From: Epithemia pelagica
Taxonomy: Eukaryota; Protista; Bacillariophyta
DNA length: 64,000 nt
Direction of reading: 5' to 3'
Assembly: GCA_946965045.2 (NCBI GenBank)
Contig: OX337236.1
Location: 1,550,001 to 1,614,000, forward strand
This document shows, piece by piece, positions 5,439-45,511 of this stretch; position 1 is the first letter of the stretch; each line of letters opens with the position of its first letter. A program made the position numbers and the translations under genes. The notes under the pieces are model-generated. The model made no database searches, was not told the DNA's origin, and saw only the letters and a program-made list of their open reading frames with translations.

Positions 5439-5813
5439 GGTCTTTTCAAGTCCACGTTGTTTTTGAGACACAGGATCTCCGAGATCTTTTTGGATTTTCG
5501 CAGTCGCACGCGACCACTACAAAATCTTTTCATCCGGTCGCATATGGACGATGTGCTATATCTCTCTCGAGCTACTCCTACCTACTATCTTTAGATAATA
5601 GCGCCTCCTAATATGAGTACGAACGGTTTGACCATGGAGTAACTCCTGGAGTAATGCTACGCGTATAGATGACTCGACCGAAGTCCTCCCAGGGACAACT
5701 AAAGCACTCAAATACAAAACACAAGATCTTCTCTTTGTACGTCCTTGCAGGTAGCAAACTTTGGTGTGCACTCCCTTTCATCCGTCGATGACAAACTTTT
5801 GAAGCGTTCCATT

Positions 5814-17500: not shown

Positions 17501-18310
17501 CTGGGCGTTAAGAATGGCGAATTCCAGCATAGCTCGGAAGGACTTCTTTTCCACTGTTGAAGTGGGTAAGCCGTTGTCGTTGACAAACTGGTAGATTGAT
17601 TGTTGAAACTTGATTCTAGCCTCGTCCTTTGACATCATGGAACCCTTGTAGGATGTCATAAGTGGTTGGTTGCTTTCTACATTGGACTTCGGTCCAATTT
17701 TTTTTTTTCGTTCCATTTCTTCTTTCACATGCGGGTGAAAAGAATCCATATGTTGGCTAACATTCGAAGAGGAGCCACTTTTCTTCTGCTTGCTGACACC
17801 ACAGAGGATGGTAGAGGCGATAAAAGACTTCTCTGGGTCTTCAAAGCAAATCGGGCACACCACAAGACGCTTACATATGGATCCCCATGACTTTTTGGGT
17901 GCTGTTTGGTCCTCTTTTGATGCTTGGTTGAGTACAGCAAAGCATCGAGAAATACCTTCCATTTTGCTAACTTCTTTGGTGTCAAGTCTTGCTTGTAATT
18001 CTGTTAACTGGCAAAAGTCCAAGTGTCTCACTGTTCCCCAGTAGGTATTCAGATTCTTGAAATGCTCTCTCGGTGGACTTTTGAGGAAGGGGACATAGTC
18101 TTTCTCTTTCTTGATTTCTTGATGAATTGCTTCGGTTCGTTGGGCTTGGGTAGGGTGTTGCCTATTCTGTTGATTGTTGTTCCCTTGGGGGGCTAAAGCA
18201 GCGGGTGGGTTCTCGTCTTGCTGTGCAGGTGGAGGGTCTGGGTTCTCTGCTTGTGTGGGATGAGCCGGGGGTGTCTCCTCTTGTTCTGCCATCGTCGGTT
18301 GTGTTGACAT
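14543..18310 (-). CDS. hAT transposase (open frame extends to 18475)
   Basis: BED-like Zn finger (CPIC..HMDSFH), catalytic CHDIW, VNDNT and FQERIFS, CxxH motif KCDMH, hATC dimerisation domain DVLQWWQ..FPSALVWLSKPSTNAFQERIFS; uninterrupted reading frame. Confidence 0.93.
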   Translation of the reverse strand: MSTQPTMAEQEETPPAHPTQAENPDPPPAQQDENPPAALAPQGNNNQQNRQHPTQAQRTEAIHQEIKKEKDYVPFLKSPPREHFKNLNTYWGTVRHLDFCQLTELQARLDTKEVSKMEGISRCFAVLNQASKEDQTAPKKSWGSICKRLVVCPICFEDPEKSFIASTILCGVSKQKKSGSSSNVSQHMDSFHPHVKEEMERKKKIGPKSNVESNQPLMTSYKGSMMSKDEARIKFQQSIYQFVNDNGLPTSTVEKKSFRAMLEFAILNAQKLSTKDCVMSNKAIIRKRLDSYNNFLQTVSSLCLNVRMAYKLICGKTIPFATICHDIWQGHRKDILGLCLMLIDPRNCVFYKIPVGLCETDGHTAAQVATHTLKILTTVGITQSDLSSSVNDNTNSAVLAGKYIVGNQTGGKCDMHRAELILKHATGLAIRRRGGRVIDQFPGFVDTYKKALKLASILMTKRKKRFQALRDYATKNHQVVVEIRMPNTTRVLGCALTFHDLLRDKYVMDDYNSQEFSVDKDFRENYLSKEDWQAIAEFEGILSPLKKCAMSLQADDPSSAAGSLLEIFGCHHGIKYHKDNGVSVLLVNPTELDTEFQRWDARLTIEKLRSKRKNIKFADLLPASRMLINRLLREFRTYMMNGDDVHAENAICGHPFLCYMAPYILKKIKIYDDYDVSRIQKQFVDDMVAKFSTPERLAMNGPAPMAETANEEVVDIEDDDSDDDDVFNIFRNHGENEDSTCVENNNLNTLDEQKKSFREQCNNEFKGFKDYCQRIIHSSWESLIREYPTVLFSEKSPKWTPQEKKKFRRACNDQDFNSVGKYFDVLQWWQANKSNFRMIFPSALVWLSKPSTNAFQERIFSFSSWFDSNRLMRNELKKHFEIRTMEMVTRKVRGEIEVNEMTLKKKSQHTTENEDEAQTRGKAEEQVRSNATQRQISPQEQLQNQQRTASSQEIDEAQAEIEAEVISVVDDDDDEDNNGTDYGSGEDNEEQNEAVEEHEQGTDEVSVWDSIAEGTTQGHMKRLKTILKGVKDMQKHHKAREQIELDEDEGNDGIVGSEYEYKCSDSNLDLVQKFDDVVLIDIVDEGDKEQMECMGRLGKDKDPFQSDSDACIIEAVKLQQMNLMAGSSISASSNRTMNPTTSTTDQGNSTSGSVQGSVTGIVSTTTPATHSTTPTTQRSTTLSKRKATTQTSASSKRVRQQSIQESASRTKSKSKSSRAKKPPPAEHIGEQQEEQRQQQRRTSPRRRTNNSNEDH

Positions 18311-18909
18311 GATGGTAGATCCAGACAGGGTGGACAAGGATGCTGGGCTTTGAAGATGATTAAGAGGCACAATCAAGCCAGACACCATGTGTTGCAAGTT
18401 GCAAGCTGCAACATACAATGAACTGTTGAAGGATTGGTGGATGGACGGTAGAGGTGAGAGGTAAGAGAGTGTCACAAGTCACAAAGATGAGGCGGTTGAA
18501 GGTAGGGTCACTGTGTGATATTGTATAGAAACGTAATTCACATGACACATTGGGGGGAGAATGGTAATTCCATCTGTGCGTAGGAGAAAATTGATTGGAT
18601 TCTCAAATTCTTATAGTGAGTAAGAAGGAATTGGATTGGATTGGGAATTGATATCGTCTGATAAAGTGAATTGAAGGGAATTGGGAAGTGTCTATTTTAG
18701 AGAATTGGGAATTGAATTAGGGAATTGACATTCCCCGTCTGAGATGATGAGACTTGAATCGGAATAGTGAATCCAAGAAAAAATCGGTATTGAGTTGAGT
18801 GGATTGTGAAATTCAATGAAAGTAAAGGAGGAGGATTTCAATTGAATGGCTTAATTCAAGCTAAATTTAAGTTACATTCCCTAAAGTCATTAAAGTCCCA
18901 CTTTTTGAA

Positions 18910-18929
18910 TTCCAGACCCTGCTAACGCC
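18910..18929 (+). repeat. hAT right TIR (TTCCAGACCCTG) and right TSD (CTAACGCC)
   Basis: Read directly; matches the left end. Confidence 0.95.
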
Positions 18930-19480
18930 GTCCTTACGCATTCGCAAAACAAATCCAAAAGACCGCGCCTGTCCCCCATCCTGTCCCCCATCCTCCCCCA
19001 CTCTTCACTTAGAAAAATTGAATACTAAAACTTTTGGTACCAGGGAAGCGACCTTTTACGCAAGAATACCGTTAGAGTCGAACGCCCGTCCATCATGTCG
19101 AACGCCCGCCTGACATATTCGAAACTGAAGGCTGGCCTCTACACTAGCATAAGTAAAACACTATCCCTAATGAATTTCCTGGATTTGTTCGAACAAATCC
19201 AGAGTTCTGGATTGGTTGGAACAAATCCGGAAATGCTCTTTTACCCGGATATGTGACGTCAACGTGACGCAAAATGCTGACGTGCACGAAATTTTGATTT
19301 GGTTTTGCGAGCTAAAGGATTGGCAAAGTCCAAACCACGGTCCGCGATTTGTGGGCAGTGGGCAGTGGGCAGTGGGCAGCACTCTATTATTGCTTGTGTT
19401 GCAATCAAAAGAGGTCCTGGTTGTCAATGGGAAGTCCAAGAAACCAATAACATCTTCATCTGCGTACTCAAATCATCACC

Positions 19481-21936
19481 ATGAGCAGCAAACGATTTAC
19501 AATCAAGGTGAGTTTTAATCTTATCCCCGGAGAATGAGGGTTTGCTGTTTTCTAGTTGCCCTGTGACATCTCCCATACTTGTACGGATCATTGTTTGCAC
19601 CGGTATCCTGTGGAAATTCTCATGGATGATCTTCTCATGGTTTGTGTCAGCCCTTTCGAATGCACCAACCAATGGAGCAAAAAGATGCTCAGCAGACTTG
19701 GAATGTTTTGGCAAATGCTATTGATGAGATCTACAACAGAAATGCTTCCCAACTGAGTTTCGAGGAGCTTTATCGAAATTCGTACAATTTGGTTTTGCAC
19801 AAACACGGTGCTCTTCTCTACGAAGGTGTTACGGAACGCCTCAATGCTCACTTAATGGATACGGTTAAGATTCTTGCGGAAACACCTGAGGCCCAACTAC
19901 TGGAACACATGTCGGAAACTTGGAAAGAGCATCAAATAACCATGGTAATGATTCGAGATATTTTGATGTACATGGACCGCACATATGTGCTGCAGCAACG
20001 GCGACGAATGGTTTACGATCTTGGTCTTCATCTGTTTCGAATCACGGTTTGGGAACACCCAGCAGTTGGTCAGCGCGTCATTGATTTATTGTTGGAGGCT
20101 ATTCGAGAAGAACGGAACGGCTTCCTGACTGACCGTGGACCGGCAAAGGCTGTGCTTACAATGTTGCAAGCATTAGGTCAAGCCGACGGAACTACCAATG
20201 TATATCAGCAAGATTTTGAACAAGTATTTTTGGGGACGACGCAGGAATTCTACCATGCGGAATCCCTGTCCTACCTGAGTTCTAACACAGCTTCCAGTTA
20301 CGTTCAAAAAGCCACGTCTCGTTTGGACGAGGAGAAAGAGCGCGCAACTGCTCTCTCTCTTCCCAGCACCTCCGAGGGTCCATTACTACATATTGTGCAG
20401 ACAGAGCTTATTGAACGCCATGCACGTACGTTGGTGGATATGGAGAATTCGGGCTTTGCGGCCTTGCTGAAAGATGAAACGAAATTGCAAGAAATGGGCA
20501 GTATCTACGATCTGTTTGTGAGAGTACCTAGTTCGGTTGATCATCTTAGGGATGCACTCGCTGATCGCATCAAAACTGACGGATCACATCTCATCAGTGA
20601 TCAAGAAAAGGGCGCGGCTGATCCCCCGGCTTTTGTCAAGGGCGTTTTGGCTATGCGTAAGAAGTATGACGAGATTGTGACCATGTCCTTCCGCAATGAA
20701 AAGAAAGCCCAGAAAAGAATGAAGGAGTCGTTCGAGGATTTTCTCAATAAAGATGCCAGGGCTGCCAGTTGCTTGGCCGTTTATGTTGATGAGCTCTTGC
20801 GTATGGGGCTTCGTGGTGTATCCGAGGAACAGATGAACGAGGAACTCAACAAGGCAATTTTGGTCTTCCGCTACCTCTCTGATAAAGATGTCTTTGAATC
20901 ATTTTACAAACAGCATCTTGCAAAGCGTCTTTTGGGTGGTCGAAGCGCGAGTGACGACGCTGAACGATCCATGGTTAGTTTGTTGAAGGCCGAATGTGGA
21001 TATCAATTTACGACCAAACTCGAAGGAATGTTCAACGATATGCGTATCTCCCGCGAAACCAGAGATAAATATAAGCTCTACAAGCGCCAACAAGAGGCTC
21101 GAGAGGGTTCAGATCTCACCAAAAGCATTGACATTGAAGTCGATGTTCTTACTACTGGATACTGGCCCTCTCAGAACGTTCCACCGTGCACTTTACCTAC
21201 GGAAGTCCAGCAAGCTATCAACCATTTTTCTGCATTTTATTTAGAAAAGCATACTGGCCGCAAACTGTCATGGCAGACTTCCGCTGGTGGCGCGGAGATC
21301 AAAGTGACCTTTGGAACGGCGGAGAAGCCACGACGTCATGAGTTACTTGTCTCTACCTATCAAATGTGTATTTTGCTTTTGTTCAACCAAAGTGATACGC
21401 TGACTCTTGGTCAGATTCGATCCCAGACTCATATCCCTGATCAAGAGTTGCGGAGGCATCTAATCTCATTATGCACGCCGAAGAATCGCATTTTGAAAAA
21501 AGGCAGCAAAGGCCGTGGAATCACCTCGGACAAAGACGCGTTTACGTTCAACAATGATTACACAAGTAAACTGAAACGTGTTCGGATTCCTCTGGTCAAG
21601 GAAACTTCGTTGCTACGGAGTGATTCGGCTGCCGAGGGTGCAAGTGCACAACCTGCGGCTTCTGCGGCTGCTGCTCCCCGTGTTCCAGTCGATGGATCAG
21701 TTCCGGTAGCGGTCGAAGAAGACCGGAGACATTTGGTGGAAGCCTCCATTGTGCGAATCATGAAGGCACGGAAAGCGTTGAATCACAATGATCTGATCGC
21801 CGAAGTCACGCGACAGCTCTCGAACCGCTTTCATCCACCTCCCCAGTTCATCAAAAAACGTATTGAAAGTTTGATTGAACGCGAGTACCTGGAACGTGAT
21901 GAGAATGAACATCGTGTGTATGTGTATGTGGCTTAG
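19481..21936 (+). CDS. CUL3: Cullin-3, 2 exons
   Basis: Exon 1 19481-19507 (MSSKRFTIK), intron 19508-19650. NASQLSFEELYRNSYNLVLHKHG, cullin homology domain and neddylation site IVRIMKARK..IKKRIESLIEREYLER. Confidence 0.93.
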
Positions 21937-31322: not shown

Positions 31323-32103
31323 TGTCACGGATGGAATGTTTTGAACTGTTGGAAGATATGAGCAACGGATTGGATCGAACCAGTGTTAGATTTATGACAA
31401 TATCTTGTTTGTGCAATGTCACGCAAAAGAGCCAACGGCAGCCAAAGCAAGATCGCAAGTTTTCGTGGCTCCGAGGTTACCTACCTACGGCAACTTGTCT
31501 TTTTGAGCTCCTTTGATGTGTGTCTCGCTCGTCGACGAGATTGCTTGTCGTCGATTTCCTCTGCGCAAGTTACAAGTAATGGTGTCTTGGACGCAACCAA
31601 GACATTTTGGAATACAACTCTGACGTTGCTACTCCTCTTCGTTTTCCCCCCATGCCGAAACTTCCGTCATCTCAACACGAAGTTTGCAAGAATCTTGGTC
31701 GCCCGAACAAATCGGTCACACAACCCATCATCTCCATATCCTCTTTGCTGTTTCGGTTATTCGATTTTCTATGAATGAATCACCACTCGATATTTCGTCA
31801 GCCTCTTGGTATTGTTGTCACGCGCGTCACAGATCCCATGATTGCTGAGACATGGACCGAAAGATTTTTCGTATTCAGTTCTCAAGAGTATATCGCCGGT
31901 CTCGGTATGAAGAATAGACGCGCGATTACACGTCACGTGACGCGGCAACGCGCAAAATACGTAAGAAATACGAGTAATAGACTCCGTACGAAAATGCAAT
32001 TGCGTTTGCGTTCTCCCTTTCTTTCTTTTTCGCGTTCCGATTTCGCTTTTCGGCTTTGACGAGTCAGTTCCACTGTACAGATTTCTGTATTCTGTTCTAC
32101 TCG

Positions 32104-32133
32104 TACAAGCTGGTTCGAGACGAAACCTGCATG
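32104..32133 (+). repeat. Left TA TSD and 28-bp TIR of the large Tc1/mariner-type element
   Basis: TA+CAAGCTGGTTCGAGACGAAACCTGCATG read directly. Confidence 0.93.
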
Positions 32134-32450
32134 GCCTAAATAGTGTCGGAAAAACTAACAATAAAGTAGGACTACACTTTAGCCGACAGTTTCCTAGCGT
32201 TCTGGTTTGCCTTCGGGTTTTTAGGTTACGAGCTTGCCCTCACATTTTGTCACGCATTTCATTCAAAAAGCAAATATCGATAACGATTAGTGACCGCTTC
32301 CCATGACGATGGCCGTCGTAGGCCCTTCGATGCGACACCACCCCTCCAGACTTTTAGTATAGGTGTAATATAACAATGCTAGAACGGTGGTGTCGCATCA
32401 AACGACCTGCATCTCGTGTTATACCAGTAGTTACTAGCTAGTAGTGCTTT

Positions 32451-34554
32451 GCAACCTGAAACAACAGCAGCCGAAGACGAAGAAGAAGAAGAGAGTCGCC
32501 GTCATCCTCCCAACCCTTGCAACCTGAGACAACAGCAGCCGAAGACGAAGAAAAAGAGAGTCGCTGTCATCCTCCCAACCCTTGCAACCTGAAACAACAG
32601 CAGCCGAAGAAGAAGAAGAAGAAGAAGAAGAAGAAGAAGAAGAAGAAGAAGAAGAAGAAGAAGAAGAAGAAGAAGAAAAAGAAGAAAAAGAAGAAAAAGA
32701 AGAAAAAGAAGAAAAAGAAGAAAAAGAAGAAGAAGAAGAAGAAGAAGACGAGAGTCGCCGCCATGCTCCCAACCCTTCTTGCAACCTGACACAACAGCAG
32801 CCAAAGAAGAAGAAGACGAGAGTCGCCATCATCCTCCCAACCCTTCTTGCAACCTGAAACAACAGCAGCCGAAGAAGAAGAAGAAGAGAGTCGCCGTCAT
32901 CCTCCCAATCCTTGCAACCTGAAACAACAGCAGCCGAAGAAGAAGAAGAAGAGAGTCGCCGTCATCCTCCCAACCCTTGCAACCTGAAACAACAGCAGCC
33001 GAAGAAGAAGAAGAAGAAAAAGAAGAAGAGAGTCGCCGTCATCCTCCCAACCCTTGCAACCTGAAACAACAGCAGCCGAAGAAGAAGAAGAAGAAGACGA
33101 GAGTCGCCATCATCCTCCCAACCCTTGCAACCTGAAACAACAGCAGCCGAAGAAGAAGAAGAAGAAGAAGAGAATCGCCGTCATCCTCCCAACCCTTGCA
33201 ACCTGAAACAACAGCAGCCGAAGACGAAGAAGAAGAAGAGAGTCGCCGTCATCCTCCCAACCCTTGCAACCTGAAACAACAGCAGCCGAAGACGAAGAAG
33301 AAGAAGACGAGAGTCGCCATCATCCTCCCAACCCTTGCAACCTGAAACAACAGCAGCCAAAGAAGAAGAAGAAGAAAAAGAAGAAGACGAGAGTCGCCGT
33401 CATCCTCCAAACCCTTGCAACCTGAAACAACAGCAGCCGAAGAAGAAGAAGAAGAAGACGAGAGTCGCCGTCATCCTCCCAACCCTTGCAACCTGAAACA
33501 ACAGCAGCCGAAGAAGAAGAAGAAGAAGAAGAAGAAGACGAGAGTCGCCGTCATCCTCCCAACCCTTGCAACCTGAAACAACAGCAGCCGAAGAAGAAGA
33601 AGAAGAAAAAGAAGAAGAGAGTCGCCGTCATCCTCCCAACCCTTGCAACCTGAAACAACAGCAGCCGAAGAAGAAGAAGAAGAAGAAGAAGAAGACGAGA
33701 GTCGCCGTCATCCTCCCAACCCTTGCAACCTGAAACAACAGCAGCCGAAGAAGAAGAAGAAGAAGAAGAGAATCGCCGTCATCCTCCCAACCCTTGCAAC
33801 CTGAAACAACAGCAGCCGAAGACGAAGAAGAAGAAGAGAGTCGCCGTCATCCTCCCAACCCTTGCAACCTGAAACAACAGCAGCCGAAGACGAAGAAGAA
33901 GAAGACGAGAGTCGCCATCATCCTCCCAACCCTTGCAACCTGAAACAACAGCAGCCAAAGAAGAAGAAGAAGAAAAAGAAGAAGAAGAGAGTCGCCGCCA
34001 TCCTCCCAACCCTTCTTGCGACCTGAAACAACAGCAGCCGAAGAAGAAGAAGACGAGAGTCGCCGTCATCCTCCCAACCCTTGCAACCTGAAACAACAGC
34101 AGCCGAAGAAGAAGAAGAAGAAGAAGAAGAAGAAGAAGAAGACGAGAGTCGCCGTCATCCTCCCAACCCTTGCAACCTGAAACAACAGCAGCCGAAGAAG
34201 AAGAAGAAGAAGAAGAAGAAGAAGACGAGAGTCGCCGTCATCCTCCCAACCCTTGCAACCTGAAACAACAGCAGCCGAAGAAGAAGAAGAGAATCGCCGT
34301 CATCCTCCCAACCCTTGCAACCTGAAACAACAGCAGCCGAAGGAGAAGAAGAACTGTCATCTTGTATCATTGCCGATCACCTCGTCTTTCCCCAGCAGCA
34401 GTAGCATTAACCACAACTACCTATAGTACAACAACTGCAAGAGTCGCCGTCATCCTCCCAACCCTTGCAGCCATCATCATCGTCATCCTCTGGAAGAACA
34501 GCAGCCAAAGAAGAAGAAGAGAGTCGCCGTCATCCTCCCAACCCTTGCAACAAC

Positions 34555-34605
<51 letters not shown>

Positions 34606-34640
34606 CTGAAACAACAGCAGCCGAAGAAGAAGAAGAACTG
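32451..34640 (+). repeat. Compound minisatellite: constant ~50-bp unit interrupted by a variable (GAA)n tract; ~25 units plus 2 degenerate copies
   Basis: Unit GCAACCTGAAACAACAGCAGCC-(GAA)n-GAGAGTCGCCGTCATCCTCCCAACCCTT, counted by hand; longest GAA/GAAAAA tract at ~32605-32748. Confidence 0.97.
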
Positions 34641-34709
34641 TCGTCTCGTATCATTGTCGATCACCTCGTCCATCTCCTCGTCTGTCTCGTTCGCTGTGTC
34701 GTCAACACG

Positions 34710-37700
34710 ATGAAAGATCCTCCATCAAAGAAGCTTTACGACAAGGTTATCCAGGAATTCGCGCATCGCGTCACTCCGAGTGGCTTTCCATGGAGAGGCA
34801 ATTGGATCGTTGATGAGCAGATTGCATTATTCTTGGCGCAATGGGTACCCGACCTAAAAAGTGCGTACGAGCTCAACCAAGCTCTGATGCGTTCAGCCTC
34901 ATTGAAAATTTTACTTCAGCAGAAGTCACGCAACGAAAAGGGTGTCTATCGATTTCAATTTCGGTGCCGTGAAGGAAGGAAGTGTTTCTATTTTGTCGCA
35001 TCAAACGATGAACCACCCAACTTCAAACATACTGCTGATGAGTGGAAGGCCTTTGCGTCCACGATATACTATCGAGCAAGCTCACGGAACAGGAACAAAC
35101 GGAAAAACCAAGCCACACCATCCAAAGATGATGATACCATTTCGACGTGTAGCGAAACAGTCGTCACGACACCAACAGATGCATCCAGTCATGTTGAACA
35201 TGGCGACAGAGTACCAAGCCCAGGAAGTCTATCAAACGAAAGTATCCCGGAGAACAACAGCAACAGTGATGATACGAACAATGGTTCCAGCAATCAAACA
35301 AATTTCTCGTCTATCCAGCATGTTGTTGCGATGGGTGTCTGCAATTTCTTTGGTGGAAGACGAGGACATGGTGGTGAATTAACAAGAGACAAGTTGGAGA
35401 GATGGATCAAAAGCCTTCTCGAAGCTGAGAACTCGTATGACAAGATGATGCGTATGGTGAACAAGGCAAACGAAGAACCTCCACCACGAGCCTGGATCCC
35501 AAAGATCCTGACAAAAGCTCGTATGCTCCGACGGGCGTATCAGCTTGCGCTGCAAACGATGGAGGCAGGTGCAACATGGGGTTCATGCTGTGATACGGTC
35601 ATCGCTGAGTTCAGACACACGAATGCTAACTTATCAGTTTTGCGCAATTCTCGGACACTGCAAGAATGGAATATACAGTTCCGAACGCGGGAAGGCTTCC
35701 CTCATCCGAGCCCATATGTTGAGAGAGGCAAAAGACCGTGCCCCTTCCTTTTTGAAATATTTCCTGAAGCCCTTAAAACCTTTCAAGATTGGGCAAGCAA
35801 GCGCCTTGAAGAACTGTCCTGTGAACTGGCGGCTGGCTACATCAGGGCGCAACTGATCCCGGCAATATATGAGAAGGAGCGTGCTAACCGTCGGGAGCAG
35901 GATCGTGTGCTCACTCTGGATGAATTTAGGTCTTCAATCAGGATGACAACTGTTTCATTTTCCACAGCTTCAAGAATCCTAAGCTTTGCTGGTTTCCGCT
36001 TCTCCGACACCAAGAAGACCTATTACAACGATCGGCATGAGCACCCAGAAAACGTGGACTTTGAGGTGGAAAAACTTGCGCACCGGTGGGTCCAGATTCC
36101 AGTCGAAGAGGCAATCAGACTCGAGAATTGCGACAGTGCTTCGCGTCTCATGAAAGATGTCTGGGCGTTTGAGTTCACCGACCCAAAGAACAACAAACGA
36201 ATGCGCGAATACCACATCGATTGTTTCCCAGAAGTCTTCTTTGAGTACGTCAAAGAAGAGAACAAGCCTTTTGGGGGGAACTTGTCGCACAAATTCCCCA
36301 GCACTGATCGTCGCCCTGTCATGATCATTGGCCAAGATGAAGCCGTCTTCAAGCAGTGGTCATTTTCCAAGAAGTCGTGGCATGACCACAGAGGGCGTGG
36401 ATTACTTTTACCGAAAGATGATGGACATGGCATCATGCTAAGTGCATTTGTCGGTCGAGTTTGGGGATTCTACTTGGACAATGAGGGTGAAGTTTCCATG
36501 CTCACTCGGGATGTGATTGCGGAGATCAACAATGCACGGAGAGATCAGGTGTACTTGGCCAAGGACTCAGCACAAAAAGTTCTTGGCGGTTGCGCGAAGC
36601 GACTACAACAAATTACGGACGCAAGCCCTTTCTGCACATTTTTTGACTACGGTACAAATAACGATGGCTATTGGACCTACGACACAATGGCATTGCAACT
36701 CGAGGACTTAGTTGATTGTTTGAAAGTCCTTTTCCCAGACTTTGACTTTGTCTTTCTTTTTGATCACAGCAGCAATCACGGAAAGAAACAGCAAGATGGC
36801 CTCAATGAGAAAGGGATGAATATAGATTGGGGCGGTGCAGTGGCAAAGATGCATGATACCGTTGTTGAGTCTGTTGGGCCATTCACGCACCCACACTGCC
36901 TTCAACCTGGGTCGACACAATGCATGATCTACACGGAAGAGGATCGTGGTCCTTTCTCGTACAAGCAGTCTCCGCTCACAGATGAGCAGCGAGAAACTAT
37001 GAAGTATGATCGTGTGAACCCAGATGAAACAAAGAAACACAATATCACCAAACAAGAACTGGTGAATCAGCTGGTTCAGAACGAAATTGCACAAGGAGCT
37101 CATTTCGGTGATCGAGACGTCCAAGCCTACCTATCGAAGTCCTTTTCTCAGCTCCAAGGTATGTCAAGAGCAAAAGAACTTCCCGTGGAGGAGCAGCGAC
37201 CTGTGATGGAGCAGGGATGGCTTGGGCAACCAAAGGGTCTGATGCAAGTGCTGTGGGAGCGCGGGTTCATTGACCCGGCAAACGCCAAGAAGTACGTCAA
37301 GGACAAGCGTGCAGCGTGGTTAGATGAGACAGGCAAGGAGGTCCGAGACGACAAGATCGCAGAGTACCAAAAGTATTCCCTGACTTACCTCATGGGAAAA
37401 TGCGAGGACTTCAAGGAAGAGAAGTCAGCACTGGAACAGCTTGCAGCAGATCTCTCGACCCGATACAATAGGATGATTAGAATCATGGCATCAACCAAGT
37501 TCCACTGCGAGTTTGCTGGCGAAGGAATAGAATATGGCTGGGGCTTTGCAAAAAGAGTGTTCCGAAGCATGAAGAGGTTGGAGAAAGACTCAAAAGACAA
37601 CTTCGTGTCGTGTGTGCGAAAGAGTATTGACAAAGTCTCGTTGAGCACAATGCGTAAGTTTGGAGCAAAAGCACGGCGGTACATGCTAACGTACCACTTG

Positions 37701-37865
37701 TTTGACAATCACAGAACAGATGCAATGTTTGAAAGTGATGGTCTATCATACGCAGAGATTGAAAAGTATGTCGATCGAACGATGAAGACCCATCGTTGCA
37801 CTCTTGATCAGGAGCATTCATTCATTCAGAAAGCCTGGAAAGAGTCACAAGAAGCTGAACGATGA
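34710..37865 (+). CDS. IS630/Tc1/mariner-related DDE transposase (long D-E spacing); frame is open from 34362 through degenerate repeats
   Basis: YYNDRHEH, IGQDEAVF (D at 36336), FLFDHSSNH (D at 36762), GWLGQPKGLMQVLWERG, TKFHCEFAGEGIEYGWGFAKR (E at 37530). Confidence 0.88.
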   Translation: MKDPPSKKLYDKVIQEFAHRVTPSGFPWRGNWIVDEQIALFLAQWVPDLKSAYELNQALMRSASLKILLQQKSRNEKGVYRFQFRCREGRKCFYFVASNDEPPNFKHTADEWKAFASTIYYRASSRNRNKRKNQATPSKDDDTISTCSETVVTTPTDASSHVEHGDRVPSPGSLSNESIPENNSNSDDTNNGSSNQTNFSSIQHVVAMGVCNFFGGRRGHGGELTRDKLERWIKSLLEAENSYDKMMRMVNKANEEPPPRAWIPKILTKARMLRRAYQLALQTMEAGATWGSCCDTVIAEFRHTNANLSVLRNSRTLQEWNIQFRTREGFPHPSPYVERGKRPCPFLFEIFPEALKTFQDWASKRLEELSCELAAGYIRAQLIPAIYEKERANRREQDRVLTLDEFRSSIRMTTVSFSTASRILSFAGFRFSDTKKTYYNDRHEHPENVDFEVEKLAHRWVQIPVEEAIRLENCDSASRLMKDVWAFEFTDPKNNKRMREYHIDCFPEVFFEYVKEENKPFGGNLSHKFPSTDRRPVMIIGQDEAVFKQWSFSKKSWHDHRGRGLLLPKDDGHGIMLSAFVGRVWGFYLDNEGEVSMLTRDVIAEINNARRDQVYLAKDSAQKVLGGCAKRLQQITDASPFCTFFDYGTNNDGYWTYDTMALQLEDLVDCLKVLFPDFDFVFLFDHSSNHGKKQQDGLNEKGMNIDWGGAVAKMHDTVVESVGPFTHPHCLQPGSTQCMIYTEEDRGPFSYKQSPLTDEQRETMKYDRVNPDETKKHNITKQELVNQLVQNEIAQGAHFGDRDVQAYLSKSFSQLQGMSRAKELPVEEQRPVMEQGWLGQPKGLMQVLWERGFIDPANAKKYVKDKRAAWLDETGKEVRDDKIAEYQKYSLTYLMGKCEDFKEEKSALEQLAADLSTRYNRMIRIMASTKFHCEFAGEGIEYGWGFAKRVFRSMKRLEKDSKDNFVSCVRKSIDKVSLSTMRKFGAKARRYMLTYHLFDNHRTDAMFESDGLSYAEIEKYVDRTMKTHRCTLDQEHSFIQKAWKESQEAER

Positions 37866-38048
37866 AACCAAGACTATATAGATAAATATCATAGCGTTGT
37901 TTTATCTGCATGAACTACTACTAGACAACAAGACTTTCACCTGATCTATAAAAGGAAACCTTGGACAACGCGGGACATTGAGGTTCTGGCTAAAATATCA
38001 AAATGGTGCTGTACAGTATATACTGGAAAATAGCTTAGTCATTCTCAT

Positions 38049-38130
38049 TTCTGTATGGTATAGTGGTAGAGCGCCACCATGACGGTGAACCCGTCAGCAG
38101 GAGGTCAGGGGATCGATTCCCTCAGGCAAC
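38049..38130 (+). other. tRNA-like sequence with Pol III A and B boxes (tRNA pseudogene or SINE head)
   Basis: A box TGGTATAGTGG 38056-38066 followed by TAGAGCG, B box GGATCGATTCC 38110-38120 in a T-arm-like context, internal hairpin TGACGG-TGAAC-CCGTCA. Acceptor and D stems pair poorly, so not a functional tRNA. Confidence 0.55.
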
Positions 38131-38455
38131 TTTAAGTTCAAGATCCCCGATTCTCGGTGGGCCGCCATATTTGGGGTTTATGGTACAAGACGTTTCCCCG
38201 CTGTCGAGAGAGTCCCCCCTTCATCAGATTTGCGTACAGCAGCCGGCCGCTTGGTCCTTGTGTATAGACACTCAGGGACCCACCTCCTCCGTTGCGCACA
38301 TCATTCTTTTGTGTCGGCTGATAAACTAGTCAAATGTGCTTATTCAATTGGGGTTTGAGACAATTATAATTTTATCTACTCCGGTCTCTAATCCCTAGTT
38401 CCGGATGAAAAGTTATTCAGTCATCACGATTAGGCTGACGTTCGTGGTTATTTCT

Positions 38456-39700
38456 TCAGCATCGAGGTTCATCCGGTTCACTATTGCTTGCTGTTCGATT
38501 CTCATCCTCACCAACATTGGAGGAAGACGGCTTCTCCGGATGGGGCCTCTCCATCTCCGTCGGTTTCTGTAATGGTACCCTCCACGAGTTCGGCTTCTGC
38601 TTCTTCCTCATCATCGTCCTCGTCGACTCTTTCCGTACTGTAGGTATTCTCCGATGGATGCACTTCATTAGATTGCCAGTTCCGAGCTGGTACCAGCTGT
38701 GGATCTCACACGGTGGGTTGTTTTCAGTTGCGTTTTCCTCGACCCGTTTGTTCGGGTGACTCAACTTCTTGGCCCGTCCATGTATTGGACAGTTTGGACA
38801 GCTCCAAATTGCGTTTCTTGTTGCTGCTGTTGTTGTTATTTGTAGTACTGCGTAATGACAAATCCATCGGTTGGTTGTCATCTTCGGATGCTTCGTCCGA
38901 TGCACTCCTTGGTTTGGAATCCACCACAACAACAGGCGCATCTTTGTTTGAGTTTGTAGTCTCGGTTGCGTCCACTTCCATGGATTCCGTATCGTTTGAC
39001 TGTTTCTCTGTACTAGGTTGTTGTTGTGATTTGGGAGTGTCCACATCCATTGATTCCACAGGATCCGACTGTTTCTCTGTAATGGTTTGTATCAATCAAG
39101 CGTTGTTGGACAATCGTACCCGACTCAGAATCCAAGACAAATTCCGATTGCAAGGCCAATTGCAGTGGAAACGACGACGACGACGATGGATTGCTGGCAC
39201 TGTCCTGATTCATTGTACCAAAGGGCAATGGTGTCCCCAACCACGAGGGTGCGGGAGGCAATCCGGGAGGTGTCAAGACGACACGCAAATTCAAGATCAA
39301 GCGATATCGTATGGTACCACGATCCGTCCATTCCACACGCGTCGTGACGGGTTGTTCTTGTGATTGTTTCGGTCGGCTGGATTGGAGGTTGCTGCCGACG
39401 ACGACGATGCAAAGACCAATCGTCCACTTTGCAAGTTCGACTGCAATTGACCAATCCAAAACCCGACAACTTGTGCGTAGGGCGATTTACCTCGAACCAG
39501 GCCAGCATAGACATCGGTAGCCTGTTGCGGCGGATTGGCCGTTTGGGACGACAATTCATTGACATCATTGGCCCCACAATTGTATTGATTGTAATAATCC
39601 GAGTGATAGAGTCGACCATCTTGGTTGTTGTCGTCGTCAACACGAATTTGAGGATGTGAATGAATGAGGCCACAAAAACTGATTCCAATACCAATCGCTC
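38456..39700 (-). pseudogene. Frameshifted, apparently chimeric protein-coding fragments inside the transposon
   Basis: Protein-like segments in different frames (DGRLYHSDYY..AQVVGFW; VEWTDRGTIRYRLILNL..LQSEFVLDSESGTIVQQRL; TEKQSDPVESMDVD; ERVDEDDEEEAEAE) with no continuous ORF or clear introns. Confidence 0.4.
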
Positions 39701-39861
39701 CCAGACATCCCCATCACAGAAAATTTTTCATTTCGAGAAATTGACGCTTACGAGGAGTATTTTTTGGCGCGTGGTAGACTTCAGAGAACCTATTCTAGCT
39801 TAAAATAAAGAAAAAAGAAATGTCCCATTCTTGCGGATATTGAATCTGTCAATCAACCACG

Positions 39862-40953
39862 ATGGTAGCAACGCGCAGCAGTTCCGTTCCAAAGGGAAAG
39901 AGGCCTACTACGGCCATGGCAAACGACAACAAGGGACGACAGAAACCTTCAGCTGTCAAGGTTGCAAGGCAGAGCAAGCCGCCACCTCCAGCATCGTCGA
40001 AGTTGAAACCTCCTGCAGCATCGTCGACGACACCACAAGTTGACAAGGAGGAGGTGGAAGCGCTATCCAATTTGAAATGGTTGCAACTGCAGCCGAATCG
40101 ATTATACTCAACAAAGCCGAAGGAAGTGAGGGAACGCTACCGAAAGCAACAACAAAAAGCGCAAGTTCCCAAGAATGCTGTGACGCCATCCAAGCTCATG
40201 AGGAAGCTGGACGCGCTCTGCAACGGCACTCCAGCAGGAAGGGAGGCGATGCAACAATACATCGCAAAACACATAAAACATGTCGTCAATATACAGGGTG
40301 CCACTGTGAGAAAGGGTCCTACCCCCAAAAATTCTCGCAGCAAGGGCGAGTTCAAGCCAGTTGGTACGTGTCTCCAACCGTCCAACAAAATCAAGAACGA
40401 GAAACGTTGCAAGGGGAAGAATGTGAAGAAGAAGAAGAATCTTGTCTTCTCCGGTACCTACATGATTGATCTGAACGATAAGAACAATCAACACTACGAG
40501 GCCTTTGTCCGCTACAAGGACTATTGCGGAGACATGGTGACCGGTTTGAAGAAAAGGCATTCGGAGTATGCCATCAGGACAAGAGGCAAGACGCCTGTCA
40601 CGTTTGAGGCTTCGCCCGCGGATCTATGGATGGGCCTTCACTTCCTCAATGATCCCAACTTTGCACTGTATGGGACAGGCCAGAAGGTTGATGGGGAGAA
40701 CAGCCAATACAATGTCACCATTGATGGAAATCTCAAGGTGACGGCCTTGCGCGATATAAGAAAAAACGAAGAGCTGTTCCTTTTCTACAACCTGGACGGC
40801 AACGACAAGGACGAGGATGACCACGACAAGGACGAGGATGACCACGAGGACGAGGATGACCACGAGGACGAGGAAGACGACGAGGACGACGAGGACAAGG
40901 ATGACCACGAGGACGAGGAAGACGACGAGGACGACGAGGACGAGGATATCTGA
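39862..40953 (+). CDS. Transposon cargo: divergent SET-domain protein with basic N-terminus and D/E/H-repeat acidic tail
   Basis: WMGLHFLNDP..YNVTIDGNLKVTALRDIRKNEELFLFYN matches the SET C-terminal motifs (F.NH-type, A.RDI..GEEL..DY); intronless intact ORF. Confidence 0.7.
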   Translation: MVATRSSSVPKGKRPTTAMANDNKGRQKPSAVKVARQSKPPPPASSKLKPPAASSTTPQVDKEEVEALSNLKWLQLQPNRLYSTKPKEVRERYRKQQQKAQVPKNAVTPSKLMRKLDALCNGTPAGREAMQQYIAKHIKHVVNIQGATVRKGPTPKNSRSKGEFKPVGTCLQPSNKIKNEKRCKGKNVKKKKNLVFSGTYMIDLNDKNNQHYEAFVRYKDYCGDMVTGLKKRHSEYAIRTRGKTPVTFEASPADLWMGLHFLNDPNFALYGTGQKVDGENSQYNVTIDGNLKVTALRDIRKNEELFLFYNLDGNDKDEDDHDKDEDDHEDEDDHEDEEDDEDDEDKDDHEDEEDDEDDEDEDI

Positions 40954-41030
40954 GCTGCTACAAATGAACTTACGAGTAGAATCATATGTCTTACTATAAA
41001 TACTACTACTACTTACTGTTTCTTGTGTCG

Positions 41031-41907
41031 TTAGTCAAAGTAGTAGTCCTGACTGAAACCGCAGTCCTGCGTTTCTTCGAAGCCATCGTCAATAAATGAA
41101 TCGACCGTCGCGTCGTCATCCATGTCATCATCCACGAGGCCTTGGCGCTCCGAAGTTAGACACTGGGGCGGTGACGGCTTGTATACCAAACCTCCAGCCT
41201 CATACTTCACGTGATTCTCCGCTTGGAGACGATAGATCGCATGCTTCTCACCCGGGGTCATGGCGACCCAAGTCTTGTTGGACGCCATGGCCGTCGCTTC
41301 CGACAGCGGTGCCGAAGTCACCGTATTGGTCTTGGAGGGCGTTGCATGTGGTTTCGAGGGCGTTTTCTCGTGAAAAGAAACAACTTCAAAAGCAAGCAAT
41401 GTCAGATATTTCTGTGCGATTCGTCCAAACAGTTTTCGGCATACCTTGTTGTTTCTTGTCTCTTTCGTTCGCGTCAATATAGTCCTTCTTGTCGTTGCGA
41501 GTGCCATTTGTACTAGCATCAGTATCGTTGAGTGCCTGGACAATATCGGCAAAGGAGATTTTGCCTGCTTTGTTGTGTTTACGGCAGATGGCAAGCCTGG
41601 TCGTCCCATTCTCATCACTGAGAATGAGCTGCCACTGCGTTGCCTCCGCCAGAGCAGCCTTAAACTTCTCCTCCTTGTCATTTGCTCCGATTGGAGCAAA
41701 TGTCTTGATTGAAGGCGTCGGTGACTTGGACGGCTTCTTCGGCGTGTTCGACGTCTTCGCCTTTTTATTTGGCGTCTTTCTGGGTGTCTTGCGCGGCGCT
41801 TCCACAGCCGAGTTCTCCGGAATCCCATCCATTGGATGGGCCGAAAGCATCGCGCGTCGAGCGGCCCGGGCAGCTCGGTCACTGGTGGGGGCAGCGGTGG
41901 TTGTCAT
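41031..41907 (-). CDS. Transposon cargo: basic protein with a partial HMG-box-like helix, 2 exons
   Basis: GT-AG intron 41384-41444 joins ORFs 41386-41991 and 41031-41882 in frame. KTWVAMTPGEKHAIYRLQAENHVKYE resembles HMG-box helix 3 (W..LS.EEK..Y...A....Y); K/TP-rich N-terminus. Confidence 0.55.
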
Positions 41908-42223
41908 CGTTATCGTCGCACTTGTCGTTTTCACAAGTTTGTGGGGTTTTGCTCTCGCAAGTTTGTGGGACAAAAATGGCGTGAGAGGCATAGATGAAGA
42001 GTGGGCATGCTCGGATTGAACGACTGAACATACTCGCAGTACTTAGGCCAACGGATCGCCGTACTTAGGCCAACGGATCCATGGTGCGCGCAAGATATCC
42101 CCAACCCGTGAGATGGTGCCACTTTTTGGAGCCATCCGCAAACGAAACGCAAATTGAATCAAACACACGACAATCAAACAGTGCCAACAGCACAGAGCAC
42201 CGCCCACTTACAAGGATCTTACC

Positions 42224-42721
42224 ATGGAGGGAGTAGACTTCTTTTTCAACCAGGAGTTGGCCGATGGCGACGTCGAAAACGGTGCTGTTGGGTTTCGCAC
42301 GTCGTTCTACGCCCGGCGGGTAAATGTTCTCCTTGCTCCTATCACCGAGGAGCATGGCGAAAGCGGCCGGAATGTTGTTGACCGTGGGCATGTCCTCCTA
42401 CAGCGGGAGGTCGCCACGGACTACCTACGCTTAGCCTTCTACAAGAGGGAAGCTCGGACGGAGCATTCCGATCCATTGGTTGTGCTTCCCGTTGGCTTCA
42501 TTGCTAAGATTGCAATGAAGAAAGCCGCTTCGCCTACAGATAGTGAAAAGAAGAAGGGACGGATTCGATTCTATACGCGGTGTTTGATCGACACGAAGAT
42601 GTGCATGGATCCGATGGTGGTCACAGTGTACATGGAGATCGCGGACATGCACCATCTCCACGCTACACTTGGCTCTATGACGACGAAATTCCCCAATCAG
42701 AAGCTCTTATTTGATGTCTAG
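42224..42721 (+). CDS. Transposon cargo: orphan 165-aa globular protein (weak PH-fold-like pattern)
   Basis: ATG-initiated intact ORF with natural composition, alternating hydrophobic strands and a C-terminal helix; family not recognised. Confidence 0.5.
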   Translation: MEGVDFFFNQELADGDVENGAVGFRTSFYARRVNVLLAPITEEHGESGRNVVDRGHVLLQREVATDYLRLAFYKREARTEHSDPLVVLPVGFIAKIAMKKAASPTDSEKKKGRIRFYTRCLIDTKMCMDPMVVTVYMEIADMHHLHATLGSMTTKFPNQKLLFDV

Positions 42722-42931
42722 ACTAACAACTATATACAGGTGAATGGTTACCGACCACAGGTCTTGCCTATAGAGCCATTAAGGGCATCATTTTCGACGT
42801 TGTATCAGAGTTTTGCCATGGCCATGGCGTCGTCTCCACAAAAGGAAGGGGGCCTATATCGCGACTATAGATTTTTGTGTAGGAATGCCACGTGAGCGTG
42901 TCAGTACAGAATTTTTTCACTCTAATATTCT

Positions 42932-42961
42932 CATGCAGGTTTCGTCTCGAACCAGCTTGTA
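42932..42961 (+). repeat. Right 28-bp TIR and TA TSD of the large Tc1/mariner-type element
   Basis: CATGCAGGTTTCGTCTCGAACCAGCTTG+TA is the exact reverse complement of 32104-32133. Confidence 0.93.
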
Positions 42962-42965
42962 GCTA

Positions 42966-43571
42966 AGGGCTGGGTAAGCCGATCCATGTTCGGCTAAGTA
43001 GGCTCAGTACATTAATCTACGTAGAGTACATAAAATCAGATAGTACACGTCACGCCGGAAATGGTCGGAATTTCAAAAAAATGCAAAAACGCTCGACAAT
43101 GATGGCGAGATCCGGTGACGCCGTATGCATTCACCCATGCATCGCATAAACATCCGACCACCGTAAGTCCTTTGCCTTTACCTTTGAAATTGTTGTCTGA
43201 AATTACAGAAGATTTGCCAAGTTGGCTGAAAAGGTACGCTCATTTTTCTGCAGTGATGAAATCGAACGACCGCCCTAACTCATTCATTTTTCAAGGGTGC
43301 CTGAATCAAAGTGAAAGCAAAGTTGCTCTAGTAGTAAAGATTCTTATTGTAAAAGTGATTCAGGCAGGCTCAATTATCCAGGAAGTTATTGCCATGGGGG
43401 TGATGACCTCGACCATTGTCGAGTGATGGCTTCCAATTTGCATTGTTTCTCGTGGCAGCAAGTTTTCAATTTGAGACCATCCGCCCCACTTCTTACACAG
43501 ACGAAAATAGTACTACGTAGATCAATGTACTGAGCCTACTTAGCCGAACATGGATCGGCTTACCCAGCCCT
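42966..43571. mobile_element. Non-autonomous DNA transposon / MITE (606 bp)
   Basis: 59-bp TIRs with one mismatch (42966-43024; 43513-43571), starting AGGGCTGGGTAAGCCGATCC; flanked by TA at 42964-42965 and 43572-43573; no convincing internal ORF. Confidence 0.9.
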
Positions 43572-43963
43572 TACCTCTAGTAGGTTGAACGACTCTCGAC
43601 ATTTTCTACGTAGTGTACAAATGCCGTACAACGGCGCACGGTGCATTCGGAACACGGATACGGATCCAAAATCCAAATATCCAAAAAGATCCTCTTTCCT
43701 CTTTTGGTGGATCCAAAGTGGATCTTTCGGATCGACGTATGCTAAAGATTCTGTGGCGGATAGACCTCTGAACCTGATGATGATGGATCCAGGATCAACA
43801 TGGAGACCTGTCAACCGCCACTAGTACATTCAGGCACTATACCAGCAAACAAATGGTAAACAAGGAATCGTTCTGACTACCAAGCCTCTCTAGCGCTGGT
43901 CGTCTCGTCAAGGCACGGTATTCAGTACACCTAGAAAGAGAAAGACAACTTCCGACTACCACA

Positions 43964-45511
43964 ATGTCGGTGGAAGTAGAGAATGATGCCGAGATTGAGC
44001 TATTGGGATCCAACGCAGCAGGAGAGTTAATGAAGCAACACGAAGCCAAACTCGATGCCTGGGCCGCCGCTCCCAGAGGGAATTCCGATTCTGTCGCAGC
44101 CGACGTTTTTGTGTGGACCAAAAATCGTTCGACAGACGATCGACTGTACTTGACGCTCCTGTCCAACAACTTGCAACATGGCCTAGCGCCCTCCATTGAT
44201 TGTGCAAGCGTACTCAAGACGGAGCGATGGCGACAATTGTTGCTTTGTATGAATGGACGGATCGACGATTTTGATTTTATCACTCTCTTGTGCCCGTCCA
44301 TCATGCAATCGTATCAAGAACAACGCGAGCAGCTATTGGTGGTTCCACGAGCGCAATTCATCTTGGTAGAAATCTGTCGCTGTCGTCAGGGCTGGTATGA
44401 TCGATTGGATTGGAAAAGGTCACGATGTCAAAGTATGGCTCGACGACTATTTCAAATTCGACCAACCAACGTGTTTTCCATTTTAGAGGCACAAATGGAC
44501 AGTGACGCGTCCACCACCACCAACACGACAACGGTCACTCGTCAGGACAAAGATACGGCGGAGAGAAAAGCCATGTTTGACCAAGAGCTGAAACGACAAC
44601 TCCAATTGTCAGAGAACAACCTACTGGCAGCTCGTCGAGGCGACCAATTGGATCACTGCCTGACACCGGACGAGGCCACTCATTGTCTTCCTCTCAACTC
44701 CCCTGAAGTGGAACAACGATTGCGTAACGCCATGGAACAACTTTACCACCCGAACAAGGATGCGCGAATGCGATTCGTAGTTCTCGATGACGTATTGTCA
44801 ACCCAACTGTCTCAGCAAGCGTACCAAGCTGGTTTGGATTGGTTTGACACGCACGGTGGCAACAGCAGTGATGGAACAGGGCACTCGGTGGACACTGGTT
44901 TCATTGCGGCCCAAACTGTCCATCGACAAGATCAAATTGTCTTTTTGCCCATGTTTGATGCTTCAAGTCATGCCTTGGCTAATGCGATGAAGCAAGTGTC
45001 AACAATCCTGGTTCAGGTTGCAAAGGCAGCGTCCATTATGGCCTCGACATGTTCATCCAGCAACACTGCCCACAAGCACCTGCAATCGACATCGCTACGA
45101 GTACCAAAAGTTGCTCAGTTGGCCCTATATGACGGAGTTATGAAAGAAGAAGACGGTTCCAGCAACAATAAACCAGGATATGTGGCGCACTTGTACAACT
45201 GTGGCGACATTGGTGGAGAGGGAGAAAATTATCGAGAACTGACAGCGATTCTGTACTTGAATGGGCCCTCTCCTTCGTTGTCGGATCCTGGTGGTGCTCT
45301 GCGGTGCTTTGACGATCCGGACCCCCCACCAGAACACGACGACTGTCCGAGTTCATATCATGACATCGAACCTCGTCCTGGACGTCTTGTTTTGTTTCCA
45401 TCTCGACATTTGGTTCATTCCGTCTTACCCGTCTGTGGGTGGAGACGCTTGGCCTTGTCAGTTTGGATTCTTCACGATTCACGCTCCGTTGTCCTTCAAG
45501 AAAGTCGATGA
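43964..45511 (+). CDS. Fusion protein: N-terminal PBDC1/DUF757-like domain and C-terminal EGLN/P4H-like 2OG-Fe(II) oxygenase domain
   Basis: ERWRQLLLCMNGRIDDFDFITLL..VPRAQFILVEICRCRQGWY resembles PBDC1 (KWRPFC..NGIVEDFNYGTLLR..PRIQFFAIEIARNREGYN). GYVAHLYN..RELTAILYLN..GGALRCF..IEPRPGRLVLFPS..HSVLPV..RRLALSVW is an EGLN-type oxygenase. Confidence 0.78.
   Translation: MSVEVENDAEIELLGSNAAGELMKQHEAKLDAWAAAPRGNSDSVAADVFVWTKNRSTDDRLYLTLLSNNLQHGLAPSIDCASVLKTERWRQLLLCMNGRIDDFDFITLLCPSIMQSYQEQREQLLVVPRAQFILVEICRCRQGWYDRLDWKRSRCQSMARRLFQIRPTNVFSILEAQMDSDASTTTNTTTVTRQDKDTAERKAMFDQELKRQLQLSENNLLAARRGDQLDHCLTPDEATHCLPLNSPEVEQRLRNAMEQLYHPNKDARMRFVVLDDVLSTQLSQQAYQAGLDWFDTHGGNSSDGTGHSVDTGFIAAQTVHRQDQIVFLPMFDASSHALANAMKQVSTILVQVAKAASIMASTCSSSNTAHKHLQSTSLRVPKVAQLALYDGVMKEEDGSSNNKPGYVAHLYNCGDIGGEGENYRELTAILYLNGPSPSLSDPGGALRCFDDPDPPPEHDDCPSSYHDIEPRPGRLVLFPSRHLVHSVLPVCGWRRLALSVWILHDSRSVVLQESR

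Follow-up and report, generated by a model that had tools for sequence, protein, structure and literature searches.

Does a long segment of a diatom genome that is bracketed by perfect inverted repeats represent one mobile element, and if so, what are genes other than a transposase doing inside it? The question is raised by a 64,000-nucleotide stretch of Epithemia pelagica DNA (contig OX337236.1 of assembly GCA_946965045.2, positions 1,550,001–1,614,000 of the forward strand), which is referred to here as the window. An initial annotation, made from the letters of the window alone, linked 32104–42961 into a hidden Tc1/mariner-type transposon with a cassette of chromatin-type cargo genes. We estimate a probability of roughly 87% that this segment is a copy of a multigene, TA-targeting, cut-and-paste transposon from a very divergent branch of giant transposases related to IS630/Tc1/mariner (ITm) enzymes. 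Its fixed set of genes moves as a unit to unrelated loci and has been kept through the divergence of at least three subfamilies.

The bounds of the element are set by a 30-nt inverted repeat with 100% complementarity between 32104–32133 and 42932–42961 and 10,798 nt between its arms. Each arm is composed of TA plus a 28-bp terminal inverted repeat (TIR). The left TIR (32106–32133, plus strand; tip CAAGCTGGTTC) is a perfect complement of the right TIR (42932–42959, minus strand), and the TA target-site duplications lie immediately 5' of the left TIR (32104–32105) and directly outside the right arm (42960–42961). With up to three mismatches allowed, the window holds exactly two occurrences of the TIR 28-mer, one on either strand, and 100 dinucleotide-preserving shuffles hold none, which bears out the perfect, TA-flanked repeat that the initial annotation drew from 32106 to 42959. 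TA is found at both ends in every copy of the family examined, namely the window copy and eight other copies at unrelated sites, one of these in the diatom Fragilaria crotonensis. The TIR tip CA(A)GCTGG is common to the window copy, two diverged subfamilies of the same genome (E2 and E3), the Fragilaria element, and metagenomic elements.

Evidence that everything between the TIRs is a single unit, as had been proposed, comes from a comparison assembly for the same genome (ENA ERZ21939226; loci in it are given L-numbers, with L001 being the window locus). A transposase (P0082) that is >90% identical to that of the window is encoded on another contig by a sister copy of the element. The sister copy (W2; L005 8928–17327, 8,400 bp) has 28-bp TIRs identical to those of the window copy (W), TA on both sides, the same gene order, and 96–99% identity to the window copy along its length, with unrelated flanks that carry topoisomerase II, MutS, and HSF genes on one side and an acetyltransferase gene on the other. 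An allelic haplotig (L012) is 99.8–99.98% identical to the flanks of the sister copy. Homology between the two haplotypes ends at position 8926 of L005 and restarts at 17330, within 1–3 bp of the TIR ends, and the 8.4 kb between is wholly absent from L012.

If the two TIRs of the window instead belonged to two independent short elements in opposite orientation, the genes between them would be trapped host genes. The sole support for this explanation is that no empty site was found for the window copy itself. Against it, an identical pair of TIRs encloses the same genes at an unrelated locus, the whole block is missing from an allelic haplotig, and in the window the 28-mer has only its two occurrences, with no second transposase and no internal TIR. 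The sister copy, the allelic absence, and subfamilies of the same build, described below, lead us to reject the hypothesis of two independent elements, to which we assign next to no chance. A composite transposon was also considered and set aside: neither end forms a short element that is complete in itself and has a TIR pair of its own, the 28-mer is present only twice, and there is one transposase gene.

Copies with the same build are present in two diverged subfamilies. E2 elements (6,975 bp) are found at four loci with different flanking genes, and their transposases are 100% identical at three of those, whereas E3 (8,370 bp) is found at one further locus. TIRs of both subfamilies begin TA-CAAGCTGGTT, with TA on both sides. 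Based on ORF-by-ORF BLASTP (ORF, open reading frame), the order and orientation of genes are conserved in the window copy, E2, and E3: transposase, a SET gene, one or more genes on the minus strand, and a gene of ∼165 aa. Elements of this genome are 7.0–10.9 kb in size with four or five conserved ORFs, and the reading frames are all open in the window copy, sister copy, E2, and E3. The expectation that other copies would carry the cargo, one of the checks suggested with the initial annotation, is thus borne out by the sister copy, by E2 at its four loci, and by E3, all with the same gene order and TA flanks. In a fourth subfamily (L004), the transposase is 44% identical (37–43% in pairwise BLASTP) and is likewise followed by a SET gene; k-mer and motif searches for its TIRs found none.

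The genes that accompany the transposase have diverged under constraint. Between subfamilies, amino acid identity is 54–61% for the transposase, 36–45% for the SET gene, 36–48% for the minus-strand ORFs, and 58–67% for the ORF of ∼165–179 aa. Selection was gauged from Nei–Gojobori counts between subfamilies, as proportions of nonsynonymous (pN) and synonymous (pS) differences and, only where computable, as the ratio of nonsynonymous to synonymous rates (dN/dS). The transposase has a pN of 0.28 and a dN/dS of 0.10–0.20; the SET gene, a pN of 0.37–0.40, a pS of 0.70–0.82, and a dN/dS of ∼0.25. Of the two minus-strand ORFs, A has a dN/dS of 0.32–0.45 and B has a pN of 0.38–0.42, a pS of 0.74–0.92, and a dN/dS of ∼0.17. 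The values for the ∼165–179-aa ORF are 0.21–0.27 (pN) and 0.12–0.22 (dN/dS). Synonymous sites are saturated between subfamilies (pS 0.63–0.92) and nonsynonymous change in the accessory genes is much lower (0.21–0.43), indicating that all genes have been kept by selection in the lineage of the element. They are core accessory genes, not accidental cargo, and the conservation of cargo asked about alongside the initial annotation is reflected in purifying selection.

These same figures bear on whether the accessory ORFs could be passive captures of host genes (transduplicates) that lack function and appear conserved only because they were copied recently. Host fragments are often picked up by DNA transposons, the presence of a related SET gene outside any recognizable element indicates that a host source exists, and the SET gene of the window copy is damaged. 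However, synonymous sites are saturated and pN stays far lower in every accessory gene, the frames are open in all four of the copies compared, and the gene order is identical despite transposases that share only 55–61% identity. We therefore consider passive capture to be very improbable.

The transposase gene (34710–37865, plus strand) is predicted to encode a giant Tc1/mariner-related enzyme of 1051 aa (P0001) with a DDE triad of D543, D685, and E941. Its relatives form a large family of ∼1000-aa proteins from diatoms (e.g., Fragilaria crotonensis) and aquatic metagenomes, and fungal proteins annotated as Tc1-like are remote matches. In an alignment of 28 sequences, D543 (in G-Q-D-E), D685 (in F-D-H-S), and E941 (in C-E-x-A-G-E-G-I-E-Y-x-W) are invariant. 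In pairwise alignments, D685 falls on the fungal F-D-C-S-S motif and E941 on the fungal C-E-L-N-P-I-E-x-x-W, a motif that surrounds the catalytic E in Tc1/Sleeping Beauty enzymes and is their signature. At exactly that region, two of the fungal proteins exceed the cut-off of Pfam DDE_3 (PF13358). Profile–profile comparison with hhalign joined the window family and the fungal group with a probability of 100% and an E-value of 4e-53 over 561 columns. An AlphaFold model built from the alignment has a mean predicted local distance difference test (pLDDT) score of 76.6, and the best structural matches of the transposase are the catalytic domains of Metnase (top), Mos1, and Sleeping Beauty. The profile of the transposase family returned only low-complexity noise from the sequences of the PDB, and IMG/VR viral contigs held no relatives of the transposase.

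Several results weigh against the element being an ITm-related transposon that moves as proposed. Some concern the enzyme. Pfam gave no direct match to the window transposase or to two of its relatives, and a Foldseek search with the AlphaFold model returned nothing significant. The spacing between D685 and E941 is 255 residues, far outside the published range for ITm enzymes (34–41 in Tc1/mariner and 78–111 in Sailor, in transposases of 323–676 aa; PMC8533490). Others concern the insertion sites. Exact-protein look-ups of two genes flanking the window copy, in search of its empty site, led back to the same contig only. Among contigs of four runs covering 39800–45500, which are assembler contigs only, none bridges 42961 because a repeat at ∼50–150× depth adjoins the right end. 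At the sister locus, the haplotype without the sister copy has the same position filled by an unrelated element of 1,129 bp that possesses 28-bp TIRs of its own. The loss of the 8.4-kb TIR-to-TIR block from this haplotype and the presence of another element there amount to a presence/absence polymorphism, yet not to a clean empty site. The check for an empty site was thus answered in part, by the haplotig that lacks the sister block, and for the window copy none was found. The search for RNA evidence of cargo expression turned up only runs of unknown kind that resemble DNA. Lastly, a SET paralogue elsewhere in the genome (L015) has no relative of the transposase within 10 kb on either side.

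With respect to the traits that characterize ITm elements, this family has the TA duplication, the short TIRs, and a DDE triad in an RNase H-like domain most similar to those of Tc1/mariner enzymes; it departs from them in how far apart its second D and its E lie and in not being a single-gene element of 1–3 kb. On sequence grounds, the transposase is related to Tc1/mariner enzymes and is predicted to work like them, and it stands outside the family proper by spacing, size, and number of genes in the element. The initial assignment to IS630/Tc1/mariner therefore holds for the TA, the TIRs, and the triad, but has to accommodate an enzyme of 1051 aa, a D–E spacing of ∼255 residues, and the lack of a direct Pfam match. 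Its description as an unusually large multigene member fits the range of 7.0–10.9 kb and the conserved extra genes, although the 10.86 kb of the window copy is swollen by a minisatellite and a 1-kb segment.

Relatives of the element in other organisms have only one gene. An F. crotonensis element, which spans 4.56 kb and is delimited by TA-CAGCTGGTTTC repeats, encodes the transposase only. Among 80 metagenomic loci collected with the profile of the transposase family, the full element could be delimited in at least eight, with TA-CAGCTGG(T/G)T tips at both ends that are 3.45–3.94 kb apart. Searches of all six-frame ORFs of those loci with hidden Markov models found no accessory genes. Because the Fragilaria and metagenomic relatives (3.4–4.6 kb) are single-gene elements, the accessory module is a derived trait of the element lineage that this diatom carries. 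The host, a raphid pennate diatom, has a Sec23 protein that shares 90% identity with its counterpart in Epithemia clementina. The profile of the SET gene matched 650 proteins at E ≤ 0.001 in a library of 1.8 billion proteins, and no relatives of the SET protein were found in IMG/VR viral contigs. The L015 paralogue (10001–11215; 404 aa) shares 43% identity with its counterpart in the L004 subfamily, and with no transposase nearby, it makes a cellular source for capture plausible. It could belong to the host gene family that supplied the captured SET gene or could be a remnant.

The SET gene of the window copy (39862–40953, plus strand) is predicted to encode a SET/PR-type methyltransferase of 363 aa with an acidic repeat tail. 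Its match to Pfam SET is weak (18.0 bits; cut-off 22.4), and orthologues in L002, L004, and L005 score above the cut-off (25.7, 25.0, and 22.5 bits, respectively). The subthreshold score of the window copy is explained by an in-frame deletion: 96 bp are missing near 40520, and with them 32 residues from the beginning of the SET domain. These residues are present in the sister copy, E2, E3, and L4. The sister copy, whose SET gene lies at L005 14171–15319, consequently has a complete SET domain, whereas that of the window copy is incomplete in its N-terminal strands, which hold the glycine-rich cofactor-binding motif, and judging from this loss, the SET enzyme of the window copy is probably inactive. 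Of the three ORFs first described as intact, the 165-aa ORF remains so, but the SET gene does not. The nearest solved relatives of the SET profile are EZH2 and the PR/SET domains of MECOM and PRDM2/12/16 (E-values of 3.5e-5 to 2.5e-4).

Two ORFs lie downstream on the minus strand and both are conserved in the sister copy, E2, and E3. ORF A (41386–41991, 201 aa) has a basic N-terminal part with TP(R/K)K repeats and a conserved central block. ORF B (41031–41288, 85 aa) has an acidic C-terminus and could be either a separate small gene or a second exon of ORF A; in splice models that join the two, many GT–AG candidates keep the frame open and none stands out. The initial annotation had described an HMG-like ORF, a label that had to be dropped: the minus-strand ORFs of the window copy gave no match to an HMG box or other Pfam domain at E ≤ 0.01, and orthologues in E2 gave only chance-level rows at E ≤ 1. 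Lysine-rich repeats of the TPKK type are typical of proteins that bind DNA or chromatin, as in linker histones. The last gene (42224–42721, plus strand; 165 aa) is the best conserved accessory gene, and homologues of its protein are found only in this genome. Weak GRAM/PH-like leads for it from the Atlas were not relied on.

Together, these features suggest how the element could work. The 1051-aa DDE enzyme would bind the TIRs, excise the whole TIR-to-TIR segment, and insert it at a TA, as Tc1/mariner enzymes do. The extra genes are predicted to serve the element rather than the host, and their most likely accessory role would be an action on the chromatin of the element or of its surroundings. 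The SET protein may methylate lysines and the basic protein with TPKK repeats may bind DNA or chromatin; such action could tune silencing of the element itself or its choice of integration sites. In its fullest form, the proposal would be that a diatom lineage of giant Tc1/mariner-related transposons gained and has retained a chromatin toolkit of its own, in which a SET/PR-type methyltransferase is joined by a basic protein that binds DNA and by a small protein. The toolkit would write or mimic histone marks on the element or its target, so as to escape silencing or steer integration, and the insertion of ∼255 residues in the catalytic domain of the transposase would be a docking site for these partners. 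We advance this full version as speculation and consider it unlikely to be correct in all its parts.

A transposon of the kind described could also carry extra genes that are unrelated to chromatin. They could encode regulators of copy number or cofactors of transposition, for which the Myb-like second protein of PIF/Harbinger and MURB of MuDR are precedents, and the SET-like fold could serve for binding or for methylating a nonhistone target, for example the transposase. Any function useful to the element would fit the fixed gene order and the purifying selection, and relatives with a single gene transpose without the others, which are thus an add-on and not a core requirement. The SET protein itself departs from the usual cofactor-binding motif: its conserved blocks are L-H-F-x-N-D-P-N and E-L-F-x-x-Y, and the N-D-P-N counts against a role in chromatin. 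The usual SET motif is N-H-x-C-x-P-N, from which PR domains likewise depart. Two of the accessory proteins are also without a detectable fold, which counts on the same side: ORF B has no recognizable fold or Pfam match, and the 165-aa protein has no recognizable fold, with a predicted structure at a pLDDT of 30. On the other hand, the nearest solved relatives of the SET protein are histone-directed PR/SET and EZH2 domains, and the minus-strand protein has a lysine-rich repeat of a type typical of DNA and chromatin binders. Moreover, SET genes of other DNA transposons are described as histone methyltransferases (cited in PMC12730594). We regard a function unrelated to chromatin as a possible explanation, though one that we do not favor. 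What stands of the initial description of the cargo as chromatin-directed are the SET domain and the basic TPKK-type repeat.

Comparisons to known systems indicate which parts of this family are familiar. Tc1/mariner elements are the textbook minimal transposon, with one gene and two short repeats. Members such as Tc1, Mos1, Sleeping Beauty, and Hsmar1 share with this family the TA duplication, short TIRs starting with CA, a DDE triad, and a second D in F-D-H/C-S-S. However, their transposases are ∼340 aa and their elements are 1–3 kb with one gene, compared with 1051 aa, 7–11 kb, and four or five genes here. Multigene, Tc1/mariner-related elements of 4–7 kb are known in ciliates (Tec1/Tec2 of Euplotes, TBE1 of Oxytricha, and Sardine/Thon of Paramecium), and some Tc1/mariner elements reportedly carry Fanzor. 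These elements likewise have further ORFs beside a DDE transposase, but the extra genes encode a tyrosine recombinase, a kinase, a zinc-finger protein, or TnpB-like nucleases rather than SET proteins, and their transposases have the usual size. A SET methyltransferase is also combined with a mariner-family transposase in SETMAR (Metnase) of anthropoid primates, the transposase domain of which ranks first among the structural matches to the enzyme described here. SETMAR, however, is a host fusion with an immobile, domesticated transposase, whereas in this family the genes are separate and in a mobile element; the association arose independently.

Closer parallels to the accessory genes are found in other superfamilies. 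VANDAL/Hiun elements of Arabidopsis, which are of the MuDR type, encode the antisilencing factor VANC, the function of which has been shown experimentally. Fungal transposons carry a TET/JBP dioxygenase (PMC12730594). As in this family, both kinds of elements have an accessory gene that selection has kept and that plausibly affects the element's epigenetic state; the enzyme class and superfamilies differ, and function is experimental for VANC and inferred for this family. SET genes have been reported from Phytophthora, inside transposons of the HarbingerS and MuDR families (Kojima and Jurka 2014, cited in PMC12730594). Oomycete elements thus likewise have a SET lysine methyltransferase as a regular second gene in a TIR transposon of a stramenopile. 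Their carriers are Harbinger and MuDR, whereas here the carrier is Tc1/mariner-related and TA-targeting and has two or three further conserved genes. Searches of full-text literature, with Repbase outside the search, did not turn up any account of the family of giant transposases, nor of a mariner-like, TA-targeting element with a SET gene.

This family suggests that the Tc1/mariner catalytic core can tolerate an insertion of ∼255 residues and that a transposase can reach three times its usual size. It also suggests that a lineage can gain a stable module of extra genes, one of which is of a histone-methylating enzyme type. As a third independent case of a SET transposon, and one in another group of stramenopiles, it suggests that transposons have repeatedly turned to this strategy in their conflict with silencing through chromatin. 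With identical transposases at three loci and one insertion that is polymorphic between haplotypes, several copies are young and intact, making the family testable at the bench. It could become a TA-targeting vector for large cargo in diatom genetics.

Relative to other copies, the window copy is an enlarged and partly damaged member of the family, in which the transposase, the 165-aa gene, and the TIRs are, as read from the sequence, intact. A minisatellite of 1.9 kb and a segment of 1,027 bp swell it to 10.86 kb, whereas the sister copy measures 8.4 kb. The minisatellite (32449–34352), which the initial annotation had correctly put inside the element, has a period of 71 bp and ∼24 units and lies between the left TIR and the start of the transposase. 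In the sister copy, it is ∼375 bp (∼5 units), such that the window array is ∼1.5 kb longer, and at the same locus in ENA contig L001, it is 663 bp (∼9 units) longer than in the window. A length that differs between assemblies of one locus suggests that the array is unstable and hypervariable or is hard to assemble consistently.

The 1,027-bp segment (37980–39006) is specific to the window copy, being absent from the sister copy and without a match among the other loci compared. It has ATT microhomology at both borders and no TIRs, so that it may have been either gained by the window copy or lost from the sister copy. A tRNA-like stretch reported inside it (∼38064–38130) was discarded because ARAGORN found 0 tRNA genes in the window and Rfam found no tRNA at E ≤ 1 in 32000–43700. 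In the window copy, the ∼2 kb between the transposase and the SET gene is without conserved coding sequence. About 200 bp inside the left end, a subterminal imperfect hairpin (32320–32408; 41 nt, 73% complementary, with a 7-nt loop) is conserved in the sister copy, in a region of 97% identity; its microRNA-like Rfam match is subthreshold and at chance level (E-value of 0.16).

Other repeats and genes adjoin copies of the family. The 1,129-bp element in the haplotype without the sister copy (L012 12152–13301, reverse strand; TIR tip CCCTCCGACTAGG) lies within 6 bp of the position of the sister insertion, and 6 bp of the site differ. The presence of two different transposons within the same few bases of two haplotypes suggests an insertion hot spot or a replacement event. 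At L008, an E2 copy lies between a direct duplication of at least 5.6 kb (1–5660 and 16882–21917) that is 95–98% identical, ∼16.9 kb apart, and includes a TLD-domain gene and two others. In the window, a 614-bp nonautonomous element (42962–43575) with 64-nt TIRs that are 97% complementary begins directly after the right TA of the transposon. These TIRs bear no relation to those of the transposon, and the word depth of the 614-bp element is ∼50–150× that of the flanks in three runs, indicating a high-copy repeat resembling a miniature inverted-repeat transposable element. One contig of run X1 skips 42967–43568, which suggests a copy-free form of a similar site. Farther to the right, the host gene at 43964–45511 encodes, according to Pfam, a PBDC1 domain fused to a 2OG-Fe(II) oxygenase.

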